NCBI GenBank assembly: GCA_964187785.1
Contig: OZ076412.1
Location: 25,048,001 to 25,112,000 of the forward strand
Direction: 5' to 3'
Length of the DNA: 64,000 nt
Origin: Amphiscolops sp. MND2022
Lineage: Eukaryota
Below the pieces are notes generated by a model. The model was not told where the DNA came from and did no database searches. It was given only the letters and a program-made list of their open reading frames with translations. This document shows positions 31,451-64,000 of the stretch, in pieces. The stretch's first letter is position 1. Each line of letters starts with the position of its first letter. The position numbers were made by a program, and so were the translations under genes.

Positions 31451-33790
31451 AGACCTTCTAGAACATTAAGGATCCAATTGTTCTGGTAGTCCTCTGACCA
31501 TTTAACGATCCTCATTTTCGTCCGATAGGTGATATCAAGGTTTCTTAACTCCTTTCATGTTGAAAAATTCTTAATAATTTTGATTCAACTTTTCATCACA
31601 TTACAAGATGATTTCGACTTAACCGTAAGTCCAACTGAGATTTTTCAAGTTTTGTCACAATATTCCTCTTATTTTGACAAAAACTGCTACAATTAAGGGG
31701 GTTAATTGAACTCTTGCATTCTATGCTACAAAAACTCTTGGCTAACTTTTATTTACACTAGTTATTATTTACACTAGCAAAAAGAAGAAAGAAGAAAGTT
31801 AGTTCTCCAATTCCGCGGGGTGGACGCTGAATAAGCATTCTCCTTTTCTAAGTCGGCACCCTCTGGGATGCTATCATACTATCATGTCCACATAGCAACC
31901 CGGGTTGACCCTTCATGGATATCTCAGTAAGACCTTGGCAAGATATTGCCAAGAGTTGTAAGATGCCATTGTAAGATCTTATCAAGACAGTCATGCTTCC
32001 AAGAAAAATCTTACCAAGAAGCCCAATATGGAAGGAAAAATCCTTCTGAGAAGTCCAATATGGCAAGAAAAATTTATCACCAACTGCTTGATTTCGAGAA
32101 AAAGCAGAATCAGAGAAGCAATAAATTTAAGTTTTGGAAAAATAACCTAGAAATCACTCAAAACAAAGTAAAACACTGGATGATTTTTACAACCACTACA
32201 AAAACATGAAAACTCACTGATTTAATTCTAACACCACCGGAATAACATCTGAAAAATACTAAAATTACCTGAAAATTACTGGAAGAAGATCTAAAAGCAC
32301 TGGCATAAGAACTACAACCTCTGGAATATCTATAAATCACAAGAAGAGAATCTAAAAATCACTGGATTTCTTCAATCTTCAAAAGAATTCTGGACGGGAA
32401 TAATATCTAAAGGGAATAAGATCTGAAATCACCAAATTTTAGATCTTCACTCCTTTCTTAAAAATAAGATTCGAAGGGAATAAGATCTAAAATTCTAGAA
32501 CTTATTCCCTTTGAAAGCTAGTGATTTTGCAAAAAAACTCAATATTTATACCATATTCCCTTCTGAAATCAAGGTCAAGGCTGAAAAATTGCGTAAAGAC
32601 ATGGCAGAAAAATTAACATCAGACCTTCTAGAACATTAAGGATCCAATTGTTCTGGTAGTCCTCTGACCATTTAACGATCCTCATTTTCGTCTGATAGGT
32701 GATATCAAGGTTTCTTAACTCCTTTCATGTTGAAAAATTCTTAATAATTTTGATTCAACCTTTCATCACATTACAAGATGATTTCGACTTAACCGTAAGT
32801 CCAACTGAGATTTTTCAAGTTTTGTCACAATATTCCTCTTATTTTGACAAAAACTGCTACAATTAAGGGGGTTAATTGAACTCTTGCATTCTATGCTACA
32901 AAAACTCTTGGCTAACTTTTATTTACACTAGTTATTATTTACACTAGCAAAAAGAAGAAAGAAGAAAGTTAGTTCCCCAATTCCGCGGGGTGGACGCTTA
33001 ATAAGCATTCTCCTTTTCTAAGTCGGCACCCTCTGGGATGCTATCATACTATCATGTCCACATAGCAACCCGGGTTGACCCTTCATGGATATCTCAGTAA
33101 GACCTTGGCAAGATATTGCCAAGAGTTGTAAGATGCCATTGTAAGATCTTATCAAGACAGTCATGCTTCCAAGAAAAATCTTACCAAGAAGCCCAATATG
33201 GAAGGAAAAATCCTTCTGAGAAGTCCAATATGGCAAGAAAAATTTATCACCAACTGCTTGATTTCGAGAAAAAGCAGAATCAGAGAAGCAATAAATTTAA
33301 GTTTTGGAAAAATAACCTAGAAATCACTCAAAACAAAGTAAAACACTGGATGATTTTTACAACCACTACAAAAACATGAAAACTCACTGATTTAATTCTA
33401 ACACCACCGGAATAACATCTGAAAAATACTAAAATTACCTGAAAATTACTGGAAGAAGATCTAAAAGCACTGGCATAAGAACTACAACCTCTGGAATATC
33501 TATAAATCACAAGAAGAGAATCTAAAAATCACTGGATTTCTTCAATCTTCAAAAGAATTCTGGACGGGAATAATATCTAAAGGGAATAAGATCTGAAATC
33601 ACCAAATTTTAGATCTTATTCCCCTTTCTTAAAAATAAGATTCGAAGGGAATAAGATCTAAAATTCTGGAACTTATTCCCTTTGAAAGCTAGTGATTTTG
33701 CAAAAAAAACTCATTATTTATACCATATTCCCTTCTGAAATCAAGGTCAAGGCTGAAAAATTGCGTAAAGACATGGCAGAAAAATTAGCA
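31451..33790. repeat. 1170-bp tandem duplication (31451-32620 / 32621-33790)
   Basis: Identical ORF triplets offset by exactly 1170 (31848/33018, 31946/33116, 32158/33328); about 10 differences. Confidence 0.97.
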
Positions 33791-34263: not shown

Positions 34264-35848
34264 TACTATACCATGCAAAATCGCATTTTGCAAACAAAAT
34301 CCCTCTCACCTAGCTGGTAAGAGAGTTGGGTAGGTAACTAAAGGACTGTCGCTTTGCTGCTGAGAATATTGGAGTGGCTATCAAAAAACTGCAGTATCAT
34401 GATTATAAAAATTTATATGGTCAAACAAGTGGCCTTACAATATAATTTCAGCTGACGTAAATTTAATAAAAATTTGTTTTTAATTTCGTTTTTTTTTTGA
34501 AAAATTATTATCAAGCCGGCAATGCCACTATTTCAATTTTAAGACGGTGATGCTTTGCGTAAGCAAGAAATGTATTGTAACGATGAATGACGTTGAAACC
34601 TCGAATTTTTGTCAAAACAAGGTACGTAAACAAAAAATACAGCTATCTCAGCAACGATAGCAAATTGATCTTTCTATGACATCTACAGAACTTGTTTTGC
34701 GTTCGGGGGCTTGGGAAGATCTCTGGTGTCGACCTTCACAATTTTATCATGTGTTGGAAAATTAAAAACGTAGTTCAACCACCTTTCAATGTTTCGTTCA
34801 CTGACGTTAATTTCACTAAATTGTTTATATAACACAAATGAATGCTTTAATCATCGTCGAATTTAATTTGACCAACTTAAGAGACTAAATAATCATCGAC
34901 TCAAGACTGTAAACTTCAAGAAAAACTGCTCTAAAGATGTATTTGATTTTCATTCAAGTTTTTGCATTTTCGCATTTTCTTACTTTTTAGTCACGAATTA
35001 AATTTGAATATTCACATTTGAATTCTACGAAATTAGCGCCGGACTTGATTGAATTGAAGGCTTGCAAGCCTTGAGCGCTTGGTTGAATCCATTTGAAAAG
35101 GTAAATGCCGAGATAACAAAATTTCTATTCAAAAGAGGCGGTCAATCTGTTCGCTTTTCATTTTAATTGACCGAGTTCATCTGACAGCTATTCATAAATT
35201 ACCTTCTTTGGAAATTCACTCTGAAGTTATTTTCATCAGCAATGCAAAATAATTAAGAGCTTCCGATGTTACAAAAAGTGAATTTGAAAAACGTATCGTT
35301 TCAAATCGACTTTTCGTAACATCGGAAGTTCGTAATTATCTTGCATTACTGATGAAAATATGCATATTTGCATTCATTGCCCGAATAAACCCAGTATTCT
35401 GCGTTTTAAAAAGAGACTGAACTTTTTTTTTCAAATGATCTTCATGCCAACACTTTTTATTTCTAAGGATAAATAAATCTTACTGAAGAGACAAATGTTT
35501 GCAAATTCCTGAGACGGACAAAAAATGATCTGGTCACATTAAAACCAATCTTGGGACGAATTTTTTGGCCAAGTTTCAAGGGTAAAATTATGATGGAAAA
35601 CAGTAAATTTCCATGCAAACAAAAATTTAAAAAGAATGTCTTGCAATTGGCCGTTTTGTCACTTCAGGTTTTTTTGTGTCTCCCAAAACTGTAAGTATAG
35701 CCTTCATACAACTAATAGTAAGTAAACTTGGTAAATTGGGTGTGACAGCGGATAGAGGAGATAAGGTTCAAGACTATATATAGAAATTGAAGTCCAAGAA
35801 AAATTGAATTATTCTGAATAGTGAAATCCTTTGAAGAATTTGTTTTAC

Positions 35849-35952
35849 GTCTCGGCCTTTCTTCTTTTGGGGCTTTTCGCGCTCCTTTAAGTCTGTCTTC
35901 GTCAAAACCAGCCACTAGACCGGTTGTATCAAATTGCTCCTGCATTAATGCA
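35849..35952 (-). CDS. Putative exon of host gene A (ALMQEQFDTTGLVAGFDEDRLKGARKAPKEERPR)
   Basis: Strong acceptor aattccttcAG, donor GTAAAA, 104 nt, phase 2 to 1. Confidence 0.5.
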
Positions 35953-36383
35953 CTGAAGGAATTAGGTATAAGACAGTGACAGATCGCAATAGCCTACTTT
36001 GGATTAATTTTCAGTCAAAACTTTGGAATGTTCTTTACCTTCATGTTAAACATTATCATCAAATCATTAAGTGTTGAAGGTCCAAAAAAACATGTGGTAT
36101 ATACAGAGTTTGGTGAACTTTCTGCTATTCCAATGTCTAGACTATTGACCGGTTTCTACTTGATATTAATTAAACTGATGTCTCACAAGCTTGGTCATTT
36201 GAGGTTGATTAGATTTATGGACCGTTTTATAAAGTTTGCGAGACTAGGTACCAGTCACAATATGGGGCTGCAAGTCGTATTGGGGTTTTGGTCGCGAACT
36301 TTTTAAAACGGTCTACACATACTGTTTTGCAAAGATACATGCTGTCATTGCAAACTTTACTGGCAATGGCGAACGAAACATCT

Positions 36384-36883
36384 AACAAGACGGGAACGTC
36401 TAAAGTCGGCGCCATATCTAAGGCTCAAAAAGCGCAAAAGATTTTTTTTGGAAAAAAACTGAAATTTTTGAAAATTTTTTTTTCTTTCAAAAAAAGTCGC
36501 ATAGTGCCGAAAAATGTAAAAGGGGGACCCTTCTGGATTTATTAACATACATTCCGTTGCAAAATATCAAAAAACTCGAAGGGGGGACCCTTTGGGGACA
36601 AAAAAAATTTTCGAAAAAAAGTCGCACAGTGCCGAAAAAAACTCAAAGGGGGGACCCTATAGTCTCATCCTGTTTTGTATCTTACGATAAAAATGGACTT
36701 ACTGAAAGGGGGGACCCTTTGCACTATCTCAAATGCGCTGCCAGTATTTTAGTAGTACTGTAATTAGTAGTTTAACGTTAATTTAAACGTTCGTCGCTTC
36801 GAGTCTGTCTTAAATAAAAAAAAAAGAAAAAAAAACGAGTGACTGTAATAGTCGGGCTCTTTTCTTAAGAAAAGCGCCGACTA
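36384..36883 (-). mobile_element. Complete ~500-bp HINE-A (non-autonomous Helentron-like) copy
   Basis: Stem-loop AGACG-GGAA-CGTCT plus subTIR AGTCGGCGC at one end; hairpin TAGTCGGGCTCTTTTCTTAAGAAAAGCGCCGACTA at the other; absent without TSD from units B-D. Confidence 0.8.
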
Positions 36884-39800
36884 AAAACAAACAGGGAAAG
36901 GCCCAAGTCGGCGCCCTGCTCAAGGTTCAAAAAGAGCAAGGGGTTTTGAATATGCGAAGGGACACTTTTGTGAAAATTGTTAAATCAAATTGGCAGAGCC
37001 AAAAAATACTTAGAAAGATACCCATGAGACTTAACAACCGATTTTACCCTAACTCGAAACATCAAAAACCCTATTTTTGAAAACAAAAATGTCGAAAATT
37101 ACAATTTTAAAGGGAAAAATCAAACAATCTCGAAGAATCCAGAAGGAGACCCACTTAGGTCGCAAAACACTTTTTCCAAGCCAAAAGTTTTTTTAGAAAG
37201 GATAAAGGCACCATTTGACCGAATGAATTTTTTTCAAGAAACATCGCACAGTGCTGAAGAAAAACCTAGTTCTATTACGCAGGTATTAAGTGAAACTTTA
37301 TCAGCCCCACATAAAATATATCAAGATAACACCCTTAAGACTCCAAACTTAGTTTTCCTTAACAGAAAACCTCAAAAAATGTGTCACAAAAAGTTTTTGT
37401 AAAGTACTTCTAAAATGTCTGCGACAAATCGAACAGTGTTGAGAAATTCTAAGGGAATAAAAACACAATTGCTATCTATGCTCAAAAAACTGAAAGGCGA
37501 CTCCGTTTAAAAAACTCAGAGAAAAGGTCACATAGTGCCAAAAAAACCTCCGGAAGGGGGACCTTTTGCTCATTCCTCTCCCCCGTTTTCCTGCTTTTCA
37601 GGCCCTGTCTTCAGGACTGGGATGCTTTGTTAAAAACAGGGCTAAATGGTTCATGAAATAAAGTTACTGCATGAAGCAAGCTTGTTGAAGTTTATGAAAA
37701 CTTATACAAGTGGACGTTTCACTTTGACTGACGAAAAACTTGACTTGCCAATGAAAGAACCTCGCAATTTTTACTTGTTACAACGCCCACCAAAAACATT
37801 CCACAATTTTTTTCAGTATTTTCTATCAGCATTTTACATTTATTGTACCGATTTTTAAAATAGAACAACACTAATAAAAGTTTTCGTCCGGCGCTTTGGG
37901 GCTTCAAGTGAAATGACGTCTCTTCACGATAAATTTGAAACACAAATCAGTCAAAATTGCCGTGAATGGGCTGAAAATGATTCAAAAATCAACCTTTCTT
38001 ATTCTTGATAGGGAATCAGCTACGCTTGCTATGAACGGAGATCATCGTGTTCTGTGGTATCCACAGTCTAGACCCTGTTTTGGAACCGTAGCGCGTCGAA
38101 ATGTGAGTCATTGGACGCAGATGATAGAATAGAAACAATTTTAAAAAATCAAACAATCAATTCGTTTCAGTCGAATCTTTTTTACTAGTGCGAATGTCAT
38201 AGATGAGTTTTTCTTATGAGACTTCGGATGAGCTGTTTCTTAAATCTCTGATACGTTTTTTATCTTCTTGACATATTCCAAATGGGAACCAAAAATCTTT
38301 CACCTACTGCTATTTTGCTCCGTTTCGCCCAGTTCTAACTTCTCAAAAATTACTGAGAGTTCTTCAACAGAAAACAGAGATTAAAAAGTTAAAACTGAAA
38401 CGTTACCGGTACATTATTTTGAAAGTGGCTTCACACTCGCAAAGAACAGGGTAAAAAGTTGATTTCCGGAACATATTTTTGCACAGGGGTATTTTCATTT
38501 CAAATATTTGTTTCTTGAGCTCAATATAGCGTGACCTGAACTTTGGCTGTTTATAGATAGGTAGTAATGTATGAAAAACTGTGGGTTTTTAAGTATACGT
38601 TCAGAAGACAAACAATAGTCAGTAAAAACATGTGGTATATACCGTTTTTGCTGCCTTTTTTGCTATTCAAATGCCTAGACTATTGATCGGTTTCTAGCTG
38701 ATATTAAAAATTCCGATGTCTCACTAGCTTAGGCAATTGACGCGGATTAGCTTTATAGACCGTTTCAAAAAGTTCGCGAGACTAGGTACCAGTCACAAAA
38801 TGGGGCTGCATGTCGTATTGGGGTTTCGGTCGCCAACTTTTTGGAACGGTCTATTCATACTGTTTTGCAAAGATACATGCTGTCATTGCAAATTTTACTG
38901 GCAGTGGAGAACGAAACATCTAAAAACAAACCGGGAAACGCCCAAGTCGGCGCCCCGCTCAAGGTTCAAAAAGGGCAAAGTGTTTTGAATATGCGAAGGG
39001 ACACTTTTGTGAAAACTGTCAAATCAAATTCGCAGAGCCAAAAAATCCTGAAAAGAAACCCATGAGACTCAAAACTCGTTTTTACTCTAACTCAATCATC
39101 AAAAACCCAATTTTTTGAAAAAATTGTCGAAAATTACATTTTCTAAAGGGAAAGGTCTAACAGTCCCGAAGAATCCAGAAGGAGACCCACTTAGGTCGCA
39201 AAACACTTTTTCCAAGCCAAAAGTTTTTTTAGAAAGGATAAAGGCACCATTTGACCGAATGAATTTTTTTCAAGAAACATCGCACAGTGCTGAACAAAAC
39301 CCAGTTCTTTTCCGCAGGTATTAAGTAAAATCTTATCAGTCCCACCTAAAAATTATCAAGACACCACCCTTAAGACTCCAAACTTAGTTTTTTGGAACAG
39401 AAAACCTCAAAAATTGTGTGACAAAAAGTTTTTGTAAAGTATTTCTAAAATGTATGCGACAAATTGAACAGTGTCGAGATATTCTAAGGGGATAAAAACA
39501 CAATTGTTATCTATGCTCAAAAAACTCAATGGCGACTCCGTTTGAAAAATCAAAGAAAAGGTCACATAGTGCCAAAATACCTCCAGAAGGGGGACACTTT
39601 GCTCATTCCTCTCCCCCGCTTTCCTGCTTTTCAGGCCCTGTCTTTAGGACTGGGATGCCTTGTTGAAAACAGGGCTAAATGGTTCATGAATTAAATTTAC
39701 GGCATGAAGCAAGCTTGTTGAAGTTTATGAAAACTTATACAAGTGGACGTTTCACTATGACTGACGAAAAAACTTGACTTGCTAATGTAAGAACCTCGCA

Positions 39801-40307
39801 ATTTTTAATTGTTACAACGCCCACTAAAAACAGTCCACAATTTTTTTCAGTATTCTCCATCAGCATTTTACATTTATTTTACAGATTTTTAAAATAGAAC
39901 AACACTAATAAAAGTTTTCGTCCGGCGCTTTGGGGCTTCAAGTGAAATGACGTCTCTTCACGATAAATTTGAAACACAAATCAGTCAAAATTGCCGTGAA
40001 TGGGCTGAAAATGATTCAAAAATCAACCTTTCTTATTCTTGATAGGGAATCAGCCACGCTTGCTATGAACGGAGACCATCGTGTTTTGTGGTATCCACAG
40101 CTTAGACAGCTCAAACAATCAGTTCGTTCCAGTCGAATATTTTTTCCAGTGCGAATGTCATAGATGAGTTTTTCTTATGAGACTTCGGATGAGCTGTTTC
40201 TTAAATCTCTGATACGTTTTTTATCTTCTTGACATATTCCAAATGGGAACCAAAAATCTTTCACCTTCTGTTATTTTGCTCCGTTTCGCCCAGTTCTAAC
40301 TTCTCAA

Positions 40308-40590
40308 AAATTACTGAGAGTTCTTCAACAGAAAACAGAGATTAAAAAGTTAAAACTGAAACGTTACCGGTACATTATTTTGAAAGTGGCTTCACACTGG
40401 CAAATTACTGAGAGTTCTTCAACAGAAAACAGAGATTAAAAAGTTAAAACTGAAACGTTACCGGTACATTATTTTGAAAGTGGCTTCACACTGGCAAATT
40501 ACTGAGAGTTCTTCAACAGAAAACAGAGATTAAAAAGTTAAAACTGAAACGTTACCGGTACATTATTTTGAAAGTGGCTTCACACTGGCA
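40308..40590. repeat. 94-bp subrepeat x3 in the array (x1 at 38350, x3 at 42460, x2 at 44610)
   Basis: TTACTGAGAG starts at 40311/40405/40499, 42460/42554/42648 and 44610/44704. Confidence 0.95.
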
Positions 40591-43500
40591 AAGAACAGGG
40601 TAAAAAGTTGATTTCCGGAACATATTTTTGCACAGGGGTATTTTCATTTCAAATATTTATATCTTGAGCTCAATATAGCGTGACATGAACTTTGGCTGTT
40701 TATAGATAGGTAGTAATGTATGAAAAACTGTGGGTTTTCAAGTATACGTTCAGAAGACAAACAATAGTCAGTAAAAACATGTGGTATATACCGTTTTTGC
40801 TGCCTTTTTTGCTATTCAAATGCCTAGACTATTGATCGGTTTCTAGCTGATATTAAAAATTCCGATGTCTCACTAGCTTAGGCAATTGACGCGGATTAGC
40901 TTTATAGACCGTTTCAAAAAGTTCGCGAGACTAGGTACCAGTCACAAAATGGGGCTGCATGTCGTATTGGGGTTTCGGTCGCCAACTTTTTGGAACGGTC
41001 TATTCATACTGTTTTGCAAAGATACATGCTGTCATTGCAAATTTTACTGGCAGTGGAGAACGAAACATCTAAAAACAAACCGGGAAACGCCCAAGTCGGC
41101 GCCCCGCTCAAGGTTCAAAAAGGGCAAAGTGTTTTGAATATGCGAAGGGACACTTTTGTGAAAACTGTCAAATCAAATTCGCAGAGCCAAAAAATCCTGA
41201 AAAGAAACCCATGAGACTCAAAACTCGTTTTTACTCTAACTCAATCATCAAAAACCCAATTTTTTGAAAAAATTGTCAAAAATTACATTTTCTAAAGGGA
41301 AAGGTCTAACAGTCCCGAAGAATCCAGAAGGAGACCCACTTAGGTCGCAAAACACTTTTTCCAAGCCAAAAGTTTTTTTAGAAAGGATAAAGGCACCATT
41401 TGACCGAATGAATTTTTTTCAAGAAACATCGCACAGTGCTGAACAAAACCCAGTTCTTTTCCGCAGGTATTAGGTAAAATCTTATCAGTCCCACCTAAAA
41501 ATTATCAAGACACCACCCTTAAGACTCCAAACTTAGTTTTTTGGAACAGAAAACCTCAAAAATTGTGTGACAAAAAGTTTTTGTAAAGTATTTCTAAAAT
41601 GTATGCGACAAATTGAACAGTGTCGAGATATTCTAAGGGGATAAAAACACAATTGTTATCTATGCTCAAAAAACTCAATGGCGACTCCGTTTGAAAAATC
41701 AAAGAAAAGGTCACATAGTGCCAAAATACCTCCAGAAGGGGGACACTTTGCTCATTCCTCTCCCCCGCTTTCCTGCTTTTCAGGCCCTGTCTTTAGGACT
41801 GGGATGCCTTGTTGAAAACAGGGCTAAATGGTTCATGAATTAAATTTACGGCATGAAGCAAGCTTGTTGAAGTTTATGAAAACTTATACAAGTGGACGTT
41901 TCACTATGACTGACGAAAAAACTTGACTTGCTAATGTAAGAACCTCGCAATTTTTAATTGTTACAACGCCCACTAAAAACAGTCCACAATTTTTTTCAGT
42001 ATTCTCCATCAGCATTTTACATTTATTTTACAGATTTTTAAAATAGAACAACACTAATAAAAGTTTTCGTCCGGCGCTTTGGGGCTTCAAGTGAAATGAC
42101 GTCTCTTCACGATAAATTTGAAACACAAATCAGTCAAAATTGCCGTGAATGGGCTGAAAATGATTCAAAAATCAACCTTTCTTATTCTTGATAGGGAATC
42201 AGCCACGCTTGCTATGAACGGAGACCATCGTGTTTTGTGGTATCCACAGCTTAGACAGCTCAAACAATCAGTTCGTTCCAGTCGAATATTTTTTCCAGTG
42301 CGAATGTCATAGATGAGTTTTTCTTATGAGACTTCGGATGAGCTGTTTCTTAAATCTCTGATACGTTTTTTATCTTCTTGACATATTCCAAATGGGAACC
42401 AAAAATCTTTCACCTTCTGTTATTTTGCTCCGTTTCGCCCAGTTCTAACTTCTCAAAAATTACTGAGAGTTCTTCAACAGAAAACAGAGATTAAAAAGTT
42501 AAAACTGAAACGTTACCGGTACATTATTTTGAAAGTGGCTTCACACTGGCAAATTACTGAGAGTTCTTCAACAGAAAACAGAGATTAAAAAGTTAAAACT
42601 GAAACGTTACCGGTACATTATTTTGAAAGTGGCTTCACACTGGCAAATTACTGAGAGTTCTTCAACAGAAAACAGAGATTAAAAAGTTAAAACTGAAACG
42701 TTACCGGTACATTATTTTGAAAGTGGCTTCACACTGGCAAAGAACAGGGTAAAAAGTTGATTTCCGGAACATATTTTTGCACAGGGGTATTTTCATTTCA
42801 AATATTTATATCTTGAGCTCAATATAGCGTGACATGAACTTTGGCTGTTTATAGATAGGTAGTAATGTATGAAAAACTGTGGGTTTTCAAGTATACGTTC
42901 AGAAGACAAACAATAGTCAGTAAAAACATGTGGTATATACCGTTTTTGCTGCCTTTTTTGCTATTCAAATGCCTAGACTATTGATCGGTTTCTAGCTGAT
43001 ATTAAAAATTCCGATGTCTCACTAGCTTAGGCAATTGACGCGGATTAGCTTTATAGACCGTTTCAAAAAGTTCGCGAGACTAGGTACCAGTCACAAAATG
43101 GGGCTGCATGTCGTATTGGGGTTTCGGTCGCCAACTTTTTGGAACGGTCTATTCATACTGTTTTGCAAAGATACATGCTGTCATTGCAAATTTTACTGGC
43201 AGTGGAGAACGAAACATCTAAAAACAAACCGGGAAACGCCCAAGTCGGCGCCCCGCTCAAGGTTCAAAAAGGGCAAAGTGTTTTGAATATGCGAAGGGAC
43301 ACTTTTGTGAAAACTGTCAAATCAAATTCGCAGAGCCAAAAAATCCTGAAAAGAAACCCATGAGACTCAAAACTCGTTTTTACTCTAACTCAATCATCAA
43401 AAACCCAATTTTTTGAAAAAATTGTCAAAAATTACATTTTCTAAAGGGAAAGGTCTAACAGTCCCGAAGAATCCAGAAGGAGACCCACTTAGGTCGCAAA

Positions 43501-45894
43501 ACACTTTTTCCAAGCCAAAAGTTTTTTTAGAAAGGATAAAGGCACCATTTGACCGAATGAATTTTTTTCAAGAAACATCGCACAGTGCTGAACAAAACCT
43601 AGTTCTTTTCCGCAGGTATTAAGTAAAATCTTATCAGTCCCACCTAAAAATTATCAAGACACCACCCTTAAGACTCCAAACTTAGTTTTTTGGAACAGAA
43701 AACCTCAAAAATTGTGTGACAAAAAGTTTTTGTAAAGTATTTCTAAAATGTATGCGACAAATTGAACAGTGTCGAGATATTCTAAGGGGATAAAAACACA
43801 ATTGCTATCTATGCTCAAAAAACTCAATGGCGACTCCGTTTGAAAAATCAAAGAAAAGGTCACATAGTGCCAAAATACCTCCAGAAGGGGGACACTTTGC
43901 TCATTCCTCTCCCCCGCTTTCCTGCTTTTCAGGCCCTGTCTTTAGGACTGGGATGCCTTGTTGAAAACAGGGCTAAATGGTTCATGAATTAAATTTACGG
44001 CATGAAGCAAGCTTCTTGAAGTTTATGAAAACTTATACAAGTGGACGTTTCACTATGACTGACGAAAAAACTTGACTTGCTAATGTAAGAACCTCGCAAT
44101 TTTTAATTGTTACAACGCCCACTAAAAACAGTCCACAATTTTTTTCAGTATTTTCCATCAGCATTTTACATTTATTTTACAGATTTTTAAAATAGAACAA
44201 CACTAATAAAAGTTTTCGTCCGGCGCTTTGGGGCTTCAAGTGAAATGACGTCTCTTCACGATAAATTTGAAACACAAATCAGTCAAAATTGCCGTGAATG
44301 GGCTGAAAATGATTCAAAAATCAACCTTTCTTATTCTTGATAGGGAATCAGCCACGCTTGCTATGAACGGAGACCATCGTGTTTTGTGGTATCCACAGCT
44401 TAGACAGCTCAAACAATCAGTTCGTTCCAGTCGAATATTTTTTACTAGTGCGAATGTCATAGATGAGTTTTTCTTATGAGACTTCGGATGAGCTGTTTCT
44501 TAAATCTCTGATACGTTTTTTATCTTCTTGACATATTCCAAATGGGAACCAAAAATCTTTCACCTTCTGTTATTTTGCTCCGTTTCGCCCAGTTCTAACT
44601 TCTCAAAAATTACTGAGAGTTCTTCAACAGAAAACAGAGATTAAAAAGTTAAAACTGAAACGTTACCGGTACATTATTTTGAAAGTGGCTTCACACTGGC
44701 AAATTACTGAGAGTTCTTCAACAGAAAACAGAGATTAAAAAGTTAAAACTGAAACGTTACCGGTACATTATTTTGAAAGTGGCTTCACACTGGCAAAGAA
44801 CAGGGTAAAAAGTTGATTTCCGAAACATATTTTTGCACAGGGGTATTTTCATTTCAAATATTTATATCTTGAGCTCAATATAGCGTGACATGAACTTTGG
44901 CTGTTTATAGATAGGTAGTAATGTATGAAAAACTGTGGGTTTTCAAGTATACGTTCAGACAATATAATAGTCAGAAAGAGAAGTCTTCACACTAGAAAGG
45001 AGTTTTTGTTTTAGCATTCAAGAAACAGGCCTTTGTTTTTGTTTCAGCCTTTTCTGAAAAAAACAGAAACTTTCTTATAGGCTTACAAAAAGGAAATCTA
45101 GTAAACGCAAATTCTTGCCTTGAATTTTCCGGACATTTCCCCCAAATTGTTGCATACGGTGAAAACGGTAAGTTGGCTATATTTTGCCCGTTCAATTGAC
45201 TTCATTATAAGTTTTTTCGTACAACTGATTTCAGTCATTCAAGAAACTCGATCAGCAGCCTTTGTTTTCAAATTCATAGTCTCTGAACGAATTAAATTTG
45301 CGGCCATTCGAAAAATTAATTTTGTGATGAACAGCCAAATTATGAGAAGGGCTGGGGCTCAGGCGCTGTCTTCAGGACTGGGATACCTTGTTGAAAACAG
45401 GGCCAAATGGCATATGAATTGAAGTTACGGCATGAAGCAAGCTTGTTGAAGTTTAAGAAAACTTATAAAAGTGGACGTTTCACTTTGACTGACGAAAAAA
45501 CTTGACTTGCCAATGTAAGAACATCGCAATTTTTACTTGTTAAAACGCCCACCAAAAACAGTCCACAATTTGTTTCAGGAATTGTCATCAAGATGCGGCT
45601 GGGGTATCCAGAGTGGAAGTAGTTGACGCCCTGAAAGTTGTTGAAAATGTGATCATCAAAAACCCTACCAAGCTCTCCACTTATTTTCAGTATCTTTGCA
45701 ACAAAGAATTGTTTCGGCCGTGCCAAAGAATTCAGAAAACCGATTGTTAACGGTTTAAAAAATGCTCCAGGAAAGTTACGAGAAAACATATGTCCTTCAA
45801 TTGTCTAAATTAATATTTTGATTTTTTGACAAGATGGTTCGTCATTACTTACACAATTGAAGGAAGGTTAATTTTCATCAACAGTTTTATAGTC

Positions 45895-61736: not shown

Positions 61737-64000
61737 AAAAAGGGGGGACCCTTCTGGATTTATTAACAAACATTCCGTTGCAAAGTATCAAAAAACTCAA
61801 AGGGGGACCCTTTGGGGACATTAAAAAATTTTCGAAAAAAAGTCGCACAGTGCCGAAAAAAATCCAAAGGGGGGACCCTTGAGGCACGTCCGGTTTTGTA
61901 TGTTTCCTTGAAAAAGTAAAAAATGAAAGGGGGGACCCTTTGGAGTAAAGTTTGCCTTGGGCGGACTTGGCCTCAGGTGCTCTGCTCAGGATTGTAAAAA
62001 GTGGACCGATCAGTGTGAGGATTGTAGTCTGAAAAAAAGGTCACTGCTATAGTCGGGCATTTTTCCCTTAAGGGAAAAGCGACGACTAAAAACACCCTTT
62101 GGTCTCGTTCGGTTTTGTATGTTAAGATTAAAAAGGAAACAAGACGGGAACGTCTAAAGTTGGCACTATATCTAAGCCTCAAGAAGCGCAAAGTTTTCTA
62201 AATATACTCAGGACGTATTCATGAAAAGCTTTGAAAACACTTTCGAGACACCCAAAGTGTGCCTTTCATGCTCGATATGACTGGAAAATCACTGTTTCCC
62301 GACTGGGAACGAAATTTTAAAAATTTTTTGAAAAATTTTTTTTTGAAAAAAAACTTCGAAAATGTCGCATAGTGCCGAAAAATGAAAAGGGGGACCCTTT
62401 GGGATTCATTAACATACATTCTGTTGCAAAATATCAAAAAACTCGAAGCGGGGATTCTTTTGAGACCTTAAAAAATTTTTGAAAAAAATTTTGCACAAAG
62501 CCGAAAAAAATTGAAAGGGGGGACCCTTTGCTCTCTTCCGGTTTTGTAGGTTACGTAAAAAAGGTAAAAAATGAAAGGGGGGCCCTTTGCACTAAGTTTC
62601 CATTGGCCTGACTTGGCCTGAGTAGTCTTATCAGTTTCTGTAAAAAGTGGTACATACGCGATGAGCTCTGTGGTCTGACGAAAAAAAAAAGAAAACAAGA
62701 CGGGAACGTCTAAAGTCGGCGCTATATCTAAGGCTCAAAAAGCGCAGAGTTTTCTAAATATGCCCAGATGTATTCATGAAAAGCTTTGAAAACACTTTCG
62801 AGACACCCAAAGTGTGCCTTTCATGCTCGATATGACTGGAAAATCACTTTTCCCGACTGGAAACAAAAAAAATTTTGAACATTTTTTCAAAAAAACTTTT
62901 TTAATTTTTTTGAAAAAAACTTCGAAAACGTCGCATAGTGCCGAAAAATGAAAAGGGGGACCCTTTGGGATTCATTAACATACATTCTGTTGCAAAATAT
63001 CAAAAAACTCGAAGCGGGGATTCTTTTGAGACCTTAAAAAATTTTCGAAAAAAATTCGCACAGTGCCGAAAAAAAATTGAAAGGGGGGACCCTTTGGAGT
63101 CTTCCGGTTTTGTAGGTTACGTAAAAAAGGTAAAAAACGAAAGGGGAGACCCTTTGCAGTAAGTTTGCATTGGTGGAACTTGGTCTGAGTGAACTTATCA
63201 GTTTCTGTAAAAAGTGGTACATACGCGATGAGCTCTGTGGTCTGACGAAAAAAAAACTAGCCACTGTAATAGTCGGGCTTTTTTCCTTAAAGGAAAATGC
63301 GCCGACTAAAAAACTAGCCACTGTAATAGTCGGGCTTTTTTCCTTAAAGGAAAAGGCGCCGACTAAAACTGAAAGAGGACCCTTTGCACTAAGGTAGATG
63401 CGTTTCCGTTGTCCGGACTTGGCGGTCTAGTAGTTTAGTTATTTTAGTAGTTTCTGTAAAAAGTGGACCTTTCAGTGTGAGGTCTGTAGTCAGGAGAAAA
63501 CAAAAGAAAACGAGAACGTCTAAAGTCGGCGCTATATCTAAGGCTCAAAAAGCGCAAAACAATTTTTTTGCGACAAACTTGAAATTTTCGAAAATTTTTT
63601 TCTTTCGGAAAATGTCGCACAGTGCCAAGGAATGTAAAAGAGGGGACCCTTTTTGATTCATAAACATGCATTCTGTTGCAAAATAACAAAAACCTCAAAT
63701 TTTCGAAAAAAAAGTCGCACAGTGCCGAAAAAAAAGAAAAGGGGGGACCCTTTAGTCTCGGCCGATTTCGTAGGTTACGTTAAAAAAGTAAAAAATGAAA
63801 GGGGGACCCTTTGGAGACAAAAAAAATTTCGAAAAAAAGTCGCACAGTGCCGAAAAAAAAATCGAAAGGGGGGACTCTTTAGTCCCGTCCGGTTTTGTAG
63901 GTAACCTTGAAAAAGTAAACAAGCCGGGAACGCCCCAAGTCGGCGCCATATCTAAGGCTCAAAAAGACTCGAAAACCACTTTTTCTACAACTGGAGACAA

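Follow-up and report, generated by a model that had tools for sequence, protein, structure and literature searches.

The window analyzed in this study is a 64,000-nt stretch of the Amphiscolops sp. MND2022 genome (assembly GCA_964187785.1, contig OZ076412.1, positions 25,048,001 to 25,112,000 of the forward strand). It contains a tandem array of four whole units, and the first of these carries a 499-bp insert that is absent from the other three (Table 1; positions are those of the window unless a contig is named). The insert is a young, non-autonomous element of the Helitron2/Helentron type (HINE). Each unit consists of segment 'a', which spans 299 bp of unique DNA and includes a 100-bp repeat that resembles a miniature inverted-repeat transposable element (MITE), followed by segment 'b', which is 1.74-1.85 kb long and is headed by an old, decayed relative of the insert. 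The insert sits within the first unit, between a0 and b1. The observations described below indicate that the 499 bp were very probably inserted into unit 1 after that unit had diverged, exactly, without a target-site duplication (TSD), and in the same orientation as the old relative, beside its end.

The junctions were read directly from positions 36000-39400, and all four unit junctions were aligned. The filled site of unit 1 reads GAAACATCT, then the 499 bp (AACAAG...GCCGACT), then AAAAACAAAC, whereas the corresponding sites of units 2-4 all read GAAACATCTAAAAACAAAC. An earlier, model-generated reading of the letters alone (the original prediction) had reported these strings and their coordinates for "unit A" and "units B-D," and had proposed that an element of ~500 bp is precisely present or absent. 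Both points were borne out, as the 499 bp of unit 1 are missing to the base from units 2-4. The left flank of the filled site, a0, is 86% identical to its counterparts over 298 bp; its last 14 nt are identical to theirs, as are the first 10 nt on the right. Units B-D had been counted as empty sites, and the empty string is indeed found in all three; but because units 2-4 are 99.4-100% identical to one another by self-comparison, they are recent copies of one site and represent, in effect, a single independent one. The breakpoint of the insert is not unique, in that CT precedes and AA follows both of its ends and the boundary can therefore slide by as much as 4 nt (CTAA). For this reason, the absence of a TSD is demonstrated by the family and not by the window site alone. 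Five T residues (element strand) are already present in the empty units, and the filled unit has the same five before the element plus two more at its 3' end, implying that the element either brought two T residues or duplicated two.

A first-look search of the genome (1.07 Gb in 1,929 contigs) returned at least 3,555 candidate copies of the 499-bp family. All 30 of the best genomic copies align from position 1 to position 499 at 95-97% identity. The two ends of the segment missing from units 2-4 are thus the two ends of a mobile family, and the gap in the window is not a product of chance. A run of five T precedes the 5' end of the element in 27 of the 30 copies (on the plus strand, AAAAA after GCCGACT), and among ~98 ends in sampled genome DNA the run was exactly 5 nt long in 65 and 6 nt long in 13. 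The flank on the 3' side is variable, with T or C as the first base beyond the element in 23/30 copies. Repeats shared by the two flanks of a copy were no longer than those in a control that paired flanks of different copies, indicating that insertion produces no TSD. A 4-nt CTAA duplication was also considered and rejected, as the left flanks of the 29 other copies do not end in CT. The original prediction had described TSD-free insertion at an A run, with the break falling between T and T on the other strand. The oligo-A run and the lack of a duplication hold for the family; a break between T and T is one placement that the slide allows at the window site, and it is not proven there. In published work, Helitron2 inserts between TTTT and T or C and Helentrons target TT (PMC5148889), oyster HINEs insert into oligo-T without duplication (PMC7492417), and HINEs have strings of 2-5 T at their borders that possibly belong to the element itself (PMC4067079).

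The relative ages of insert and array were compared through their divergence. The insert differs by 2.0% from the consensus of the 29 other copies, the average for those copies being 1.8%. Between units 1 and 2, the divergence is 15% in 'a' (Kimura two-parameter distance), 7.7% over the proximal 1.2 kb of 'b', and 2-3% in the remainder of 'b'. The 15 and 7.7% that separate the flanks of filled and empty units amount to roughly 4-8% per lineage, and against these values the element appears to postdate the separation of unit 1 from the other units. The fall in divergence along unit 1 (15 to 7.7 to 2-3%) suggests a mosaic history shaped by gene conversion or unequal crossing-over, as opposed to a single date of duplication.

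Table 1. Features of the array, the insert, and its target site in the window.
Feature	Position	Strand	Basis or comment
Locus-specific tandem duplication, four whole units	36086-44977	+	Self-comparison; homology starts and ends at the same point of the unit
Array units 1-4	36086-38623 (with insert), 38624-40772, 40773-42921, 42922-44977	+	Self-comparison
a0, left flank of filled site	36086-36383	+	Paralogous to 38624-38921, 40773-41070, 42922-43219
Young 499-bp non-autonomous Helitron2/Helentron-type element (HINE)	36384-36882	-	Its own 5' to 3' direction is the window minus strand
Element 3' end: 5-bp stem and 4-nt loop (36388-36401), then terminal TGTT	36384-36403	-	Fold
3' subterminal inverted repeat GGCGCCGACT (element strand)	36404-36413	-	20 nt inside the 3' end; motif scan
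Internal imperfect repeats, units ending in GGGGGACCC	36485-36720	-	Self-matches 102-148 vs. 226-275 at 84%
Element 5' end: terminal inverted repeat AGTCGGCGC, the outer arm of the 5' hairpin	36874-36882 (reverse complement); hairpin 36850-36882	-	Motif scan and fold
A5 run (T5 on element strand)	36883-36887	-	Directly before the element's 5' end; same run already in the empty sites
Old decayed relative, head of 'b', same orientation as insert	36886-~37600	-	3' end lies 3 nt away from the insertion point and reads AACAAAC... on the plus strand
Empty site 1	38913-38931, junction 38921/38922	+	Sequence reading and junction alignment
Empty site 2	41062-41080, junction 41070/41071	+	Recent copy of site 1; alignment and self-comparison
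Empty site 3	43211-43229, junction 43219/43220	+	Recent copy of site 1; alignment and self-comparison

The unit that was duplicated is not itself mobile. Neither a probe spanning the a/b junction nor one spanning distal 'b' and the start of 'a' had a full-length match in the 1.07-Gb genome outside this array; the only parts of the unit that are dispersed are the 100-bp MITE-like piece of 'a' and the first 200-400 bp of 'b'. Since the unit occurs solely at this locus, we regard it as a local segmental duplication, and the possibilities that the 2.1-kb unit is a mobile element or a rolling-circle concatemer were rejected on the same ground. The tandem array described by the original prediction is therefore real and has four units, but it is a duplication particular to the locus and not a concatemer of elements, and the further 2.1-kb units, with and without the insert, for which it had proposed a genome-wide search are found nowhere beyond it. 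Contig depths in one public sequencing run (X1) were ~36, ~93, and ~140 for segments specific to unit 1, specific to units 2-4, and shared by all, a ratio of 1 : ~2.5 : ~3.8 that fits 1, 3, and 4 copies, with the caveat that contig depth is not a copy number.

Three other features of the array were noted. The MITE-like piece is a palindromic repeat of ~100 bp (38754-38854, and likewise in a0, a2, and a3) that matches itself on both strands; it has many genomic copies at 91-97% identity, and these dominate the matches of the junction probe. A perfect 94-bp tandem repeat (40308-40592, 42457-42741, 44607-44797) is present in 1, 3, 3, and 2 copies in units 1 to 4, respectively, and represents a change of copy number nested within the larger tandem duplication. 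Finally, all four public runs contain a contig that, over ~400 bp at 35839-36252, shows 9-10 substitutions and 3-4 small indels relative to the window sequence; this contig derives from either a second haplotype or a close paralog.

The structure of the insert accounts for its assignment. Its inverted repeats are asymmetric, one being terminal at the 5' end and the other lying 20 nt inside the 3' end. The 33-nt hairpin that contains the 5' repeat has a predicted DNA folding energy of -10.6 kcal/mol (z -3.8). Read on the element strand, the 3' end consists of the subterminal repeat, TT, the stem-loop, and TGTT, so that the stem-loop stops 4 nt short of the terminus. Between subfamilies the 3' stem occurs in two forms, related by a double change that preserves the base pairs (GACG/CGTC in 55 cases, GCCG/CGGC in 16, mixed in 4). 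With regard to coding capacity, the listing of open reading frames contains no frame of more than 85 amino acids in the element, merely short frames of the kind that arise mechanically. Judged by this structure, the family can be assigned to the non-autonomous members of the Helitron2/Helentron group (HINE/DINE-1 type). The original prediction of a Helentron-like element with the published signature thus holds at the level of that group (PMC4067079, PMC7492417, PMC5148889); Helentron and Helitron2 themselves cannot be told apart, since the distinction would depend on the partner enzyme and on whether it has an endonuclease domain. Three other classes were tried and rejected. A canonical Helitron has TC...CTRR ends, a hairpin 10-12 nt from the 3' end, and inserts between A and T, whereas the ends here are AGTCGG...CTTGTT and the flanks are T5 and mostly T or C. 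A short interspersed element or other retroposon would have a variable A tail and a TSD of several bases, whereas the A run is fixed at five and there is no duplication. A MITE of the terminal-inverted-repeat type, which would have repeats at both extremities and a duplication of fixed length, is excluded by the position of the second repeat, 20 nt inside its end, and again by the lack of a duplication.

The resemblance to the non-autonomous HINE/DINE-1 Helentrons known from Drosophila, mites, mosquitoes, and oysters (PMC4067079, PMC7492417) is extensive. It comprises subterminal inverted repeats, a 5' inverted repeat nested in a 5' repeat, a 3' stem-loop near the end, central tandem repeats, lack of coding sequence, very high copy number, and insertion at oligo-T or TT without a TSD and with T strings at the borders; as in those papers, the boundaries were confirmed through paralogous empty sites. 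The window family differs in that its terminal sequences are specific to this genome and in that the T run preceding the 5' end has a length of exactly five in nearly all cases. Helitron2 elements, in turn, have asymmetric terminal inverted repeats and hairpins at both ends (PMC5148889). The window family shares with them a 5' terminal repeat that pairs with a 3' repeat lying 20 nt inside the end, hairpins at both ends, a T run as the 5' flank, and a T or C as the 3' flank in most copies, but at the window site the 3' flanking base is A. A search of the genome with the Pfam Helitron_like_N profile gave 152 matches, with open frames of up to ~2,600 amino acids, and several rolling-circle transposase lineages are apparently intact. 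Among these were a cluster of uninterrupted frames, each of ~2,370 amino acids, at 73.4-76.5 Mb of the largest contig (C1) and others of 1,320 and 2,545-2,603 amino acids.

The original prediction had placed the target at the terminus of an older related copy, and this was confirmed. In the junction probe, the matches to dispersed copies of the old family (78-82% identity) start at positions 199-202, at most 3 nt from the junction, and the consensus of this family starts with AACAAGCCGGGAAC... When the two heads are aligned, 'b' is seen to begin in a manner similar to the insert, with the same subterminal module (the subterminal repeat of the old relative lies at 36906-36915) and a decayed stem-loop. 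The extent of the old relative given in Table 1 is approximate, as its limit at ~37600 was set by eye from the last HINE-type internal motifs and not by a tool. The T run at the target is composed of the terminal TT of the old element and three flanking T, and the young element follows directly and in the same orientation. Elsewhere in the window, a direct duplication with a period of ~1,170 bp (31851 and 33021; 32001-32073 and 33171-33243) contains AGTCGGCACC modules together with internal repeats of 32 and 21 bp.

The arrangement of two related elements in a row was then counted across the genome as exact patterns. There were 40,098 'tails' (GCGCCGACTAA) and 27,262 'heads' (AACAAGNCGGGAAC). 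A tail followed by a head in the same orientation at a distance of 0-8 nt was found 301 times, whereas a head-to-head arrangement at 0-8 nt was found at 3 loci and a tail-to-tail arrangement at 0-14 nt at no more than 5. The build-up of head-to-tail clusters by insertion at termini, which the original prediction had suggested from the window, thus has a genome-wide counterpart in a bias toward one orientation. A hand count of the spacers in the first 100 listed tail-to-head junctions gave AAA in 43, none in 24, and AAAA in 16; an AAA spacer brings the run to five A, the length seen at the window site. In 30 junctions that were sampled, the partners mostly belonged to different subfamilies, which supports serial insertion. 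Empty sites for such junctions were also sought by a chimeric-flank search in ~354 kb of sampled DNA, which returned mostly nested-repeat noise but also two clean pairs and one gappy pair at 79%. The two clean filled/empty pairs (L088 vs. L074 at 96%, L087 vs. L086 at 87%) are both located at the A run that precedes an older head, and in each the empty site holds the older partner only. Serial insertion of elements in the same orientation at the ends of others is therefore real and common in this genome.

An alternative explanation for head-to-tail clusters is that they arise mainly from rolling-circle concatemers or local tandem duplication and that the window case is exceptional. Consistent with this, 9 of the 30 sampled junctions (L062, L063, L065, L070-L073, L079, L080) have near-identical neighbors or are repeat copies of one junction, at 94-99%; heads form regular arrays with periods of ~484 and ~1,230 bp on contig C1; and tandem Helitrons in the bat have been ascribed to rolling-circle replication (cited in PMC2267711 and PMC5876387). 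As a general account it is nonetheless rather unlikely, given that different subfamilies are joined at most sampled junctions, that 23 of the 30 are distinct, and that three junctions have a paralogous site at which the older partner stands alone. Concatemers and local duplication explain a minority of the junctions. The arrays on C1 (7591-10986 and 493786-500059, near the start of the contig) are satellite-like and consist of units of HINE type, as seen from pattern coordinates only. Within the window, a 57-bp tandem duplication of a HINE hairpin end at 63251-63368 places two such ends in a row, with an A run after each.

The preference for resident ends was estimated from counts of this kind. 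Heads preceded by AAA numbered 3,234 of 27,262 (11.9%), compared with roughly 4% expected from base composition, from which it follows that many 3' ends have extra T residues after them on the element strand. Junctions of the A-run type numbered ~178, against ~7 expected at the generic rate at which A/T runs are hit; the expectation derives from a density of ~13.8 A/T runs of at least 5 nt per kb in the window, corresponding to a generic occupancy of ~0.2%. The comparison is a rough one, in that the density was taken from a single window, some junctions are secondary copies, and the run is perhaps partly borne by the element, and a part of the A5/T5 run carried by the element (cf. PMC4067079) would weaken the enrichment at resident ends. 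It is conceivable, if somewhat doubtful, that the resident 3' ends themselves, and not just the T runs adjoining them, are preferred landing sites for one orientation, for example because the transposase recognizes and nicks a resident end as it would its own.

Neighboring elements of this kind have precedents among canonical Helitrons. In the r1 region of maize, adjacent head-to-tail Helitrons were shown to have arisen by consecutive insertion (PMC2267711), whereas tandem Helitrons in the bat were attributed to rolling-circle replication (PMC2267711, PMC5876387). The window resembles the maize locus in having two different rolling-circle elements side by side with matching orientation, one of which is identified as the later arrival by its presence or absence. 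The maize and bat cases, however, are single cases of canonical Helitrons with TC...CTAG ends and an A-T target, whereas the present case concerns the Helitron2/Helentron group, compares paralogous units of one array, and is accompanied by a genome-wide count of the pattern. The bacterial single-strand HUH transposons IS200/IS605 and IS91 are alike in their strand-specific insertion beside a short, fixed, unduplicated flank that can be used again for the next insertion; this is an analogy of mechanism only, and no link of sequence or protein is drawn.

At the window site itself, the difference between filled and empty units could in principle reflect loss rather than gain, if the ancestral unit held the 499 bp and these were removed exactly in the ancestor of units 2-4, either through excision by a transposase or through a deletion between the CTAA direct repeats. 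The filled sequence, CAT-CTAA-CAAG...GA-CTAA-AAAC, does collapse to the empty string that is observed, and clean excision of Helitrons has been discussed for maize (PMC2267711). An insert that is 2.0% from its consensus is nevertheless difficult to reconcile with flanks that differ by 7.7-15% between filled and empty units; in addition, a random microhomology deletion is very unlikely to strike both ends of a transposon within 2 nt, and experiments with Helraiser found no empty donor sites (PMC5876387). We therefore consider exact removal quite improbable. Mis-assembly of the filled junction, or of the number of near-identical units, appears more improbable still: the near-identity of units 2-4 (99.4-100%) would invite such an error and no contig of the public runs spans a junction, but the depths in run X1 fit the assembled unit numbers, as far as contig depth can indicate them, and the insert is bordered on each side by diverged flanks peculiar to unit 1, so that collapsed copies from elsewhere do not account for the filled site. 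Loss by unequal recombination between the two similar start modules of the insert and the old element, each with AGTCGGCGCC, can be practically dismissed even though the two starts share ~55 nt at roughly 70% identity and BLAST matches a0 and the adjoining start of the insert to a1 and the start of b2, because its product should have the insert-type letters ACGGGAACGTCTAA to the left of the module, where the empty units have the old-family CCGGGAAACGCCCA, and because a crossover within the first five shared bases would remove the three extra A that the empty units have kept in front. The original prediction had itself named a predominance of filled copies, with loss between the AGTCGGCGCC modules, as the outcome that would speak for recombination; the unit proved to be confined to this locus and no HINE-type letters remain to the left of the module, and insertion into unit 1 stands as the most probable explanation.

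Several points weigh against this conclusion or limit its detail. The paralogous empty sites amount to one, and their flanks have diverged by 8-15% from those of the filled unit. No allelic or orthologous empty site was found in the four public runs, which consist of short Logan contigs from one sample, none of which spans the junction. Gene conversion or mosaicism along unit 1 blurs the dating of the insert relative to the duplication. Given the 4-nt slide, a 2-nt duplication of AA/TT cannot be told from two bases borne by the element, and the two additional filled/empty pairs have 1-2 more A when filled than predicted, so that the element may bring along part of the A5/T5 run. Lastly, no autonomous partner with the same ends has been linked to the family, the ends of the Helitron_like_N loci not having been read.

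The history that we propose for the locus begins with the tandem duplication of a local stretch of 2.04 kb, made up of unique 'a' and of 'b', the latter headed by a few hundred bp of an old Helitron2/Helentron-type element. Unit 1 would then have diverged, after which a young 499-bp HINE-type copy of a related and very abundant family would have entered unit 1 alone. This element was presumably moved in trans, by a rolling-circle mechanism, with the Rep-helicase transposase supplied by an autonomous Helentron or Helitron2 of this genome. It would have landed right after five T on its own strand, oriented as the old element and making no TSD, while units 2-4 would have kept the pre-insertion state and later been copied from one another. 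More generally, members of the family probably bring T runs with them or form them anew, at both ends and on one strand, and integrate strand-specifically beside T runs. The end of a resident element would then readily receive the next copy in the same orientation, with head-to-tail clusters as the result.

Paralogous empty sites, an oligo-T target, and the absence of a duplication are part of the standard description of HINEs (PMC4067079, PMC7492417), and the known picture of these elements is unchanged. What is added here for the Helitron2/Helentron group is a clean control within one array and a genome-wide count of the orientation bias. Filled and empty sites only a few kb apart provide an unusually clean internal control, demonstrating that consecutive insertion can yield head-to-tail neighbors in this group, and the counts of 301 vs. 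3 and at most 5 quantify a bias known from the literature consulted chiefly as single cases. The locus also gives base-level boundaries and the target of the genome's dominant repeat family, which helps repeat annotation. Taken as a whole, the orientation bias bears on how clusters of transposons become tandem repeats; if insertion is targeted to resident ends, then the head-to-tail HINE arrays from which satellite DNA later grows would be seeded mainly by serial insertion and not by the formation of concatemers.

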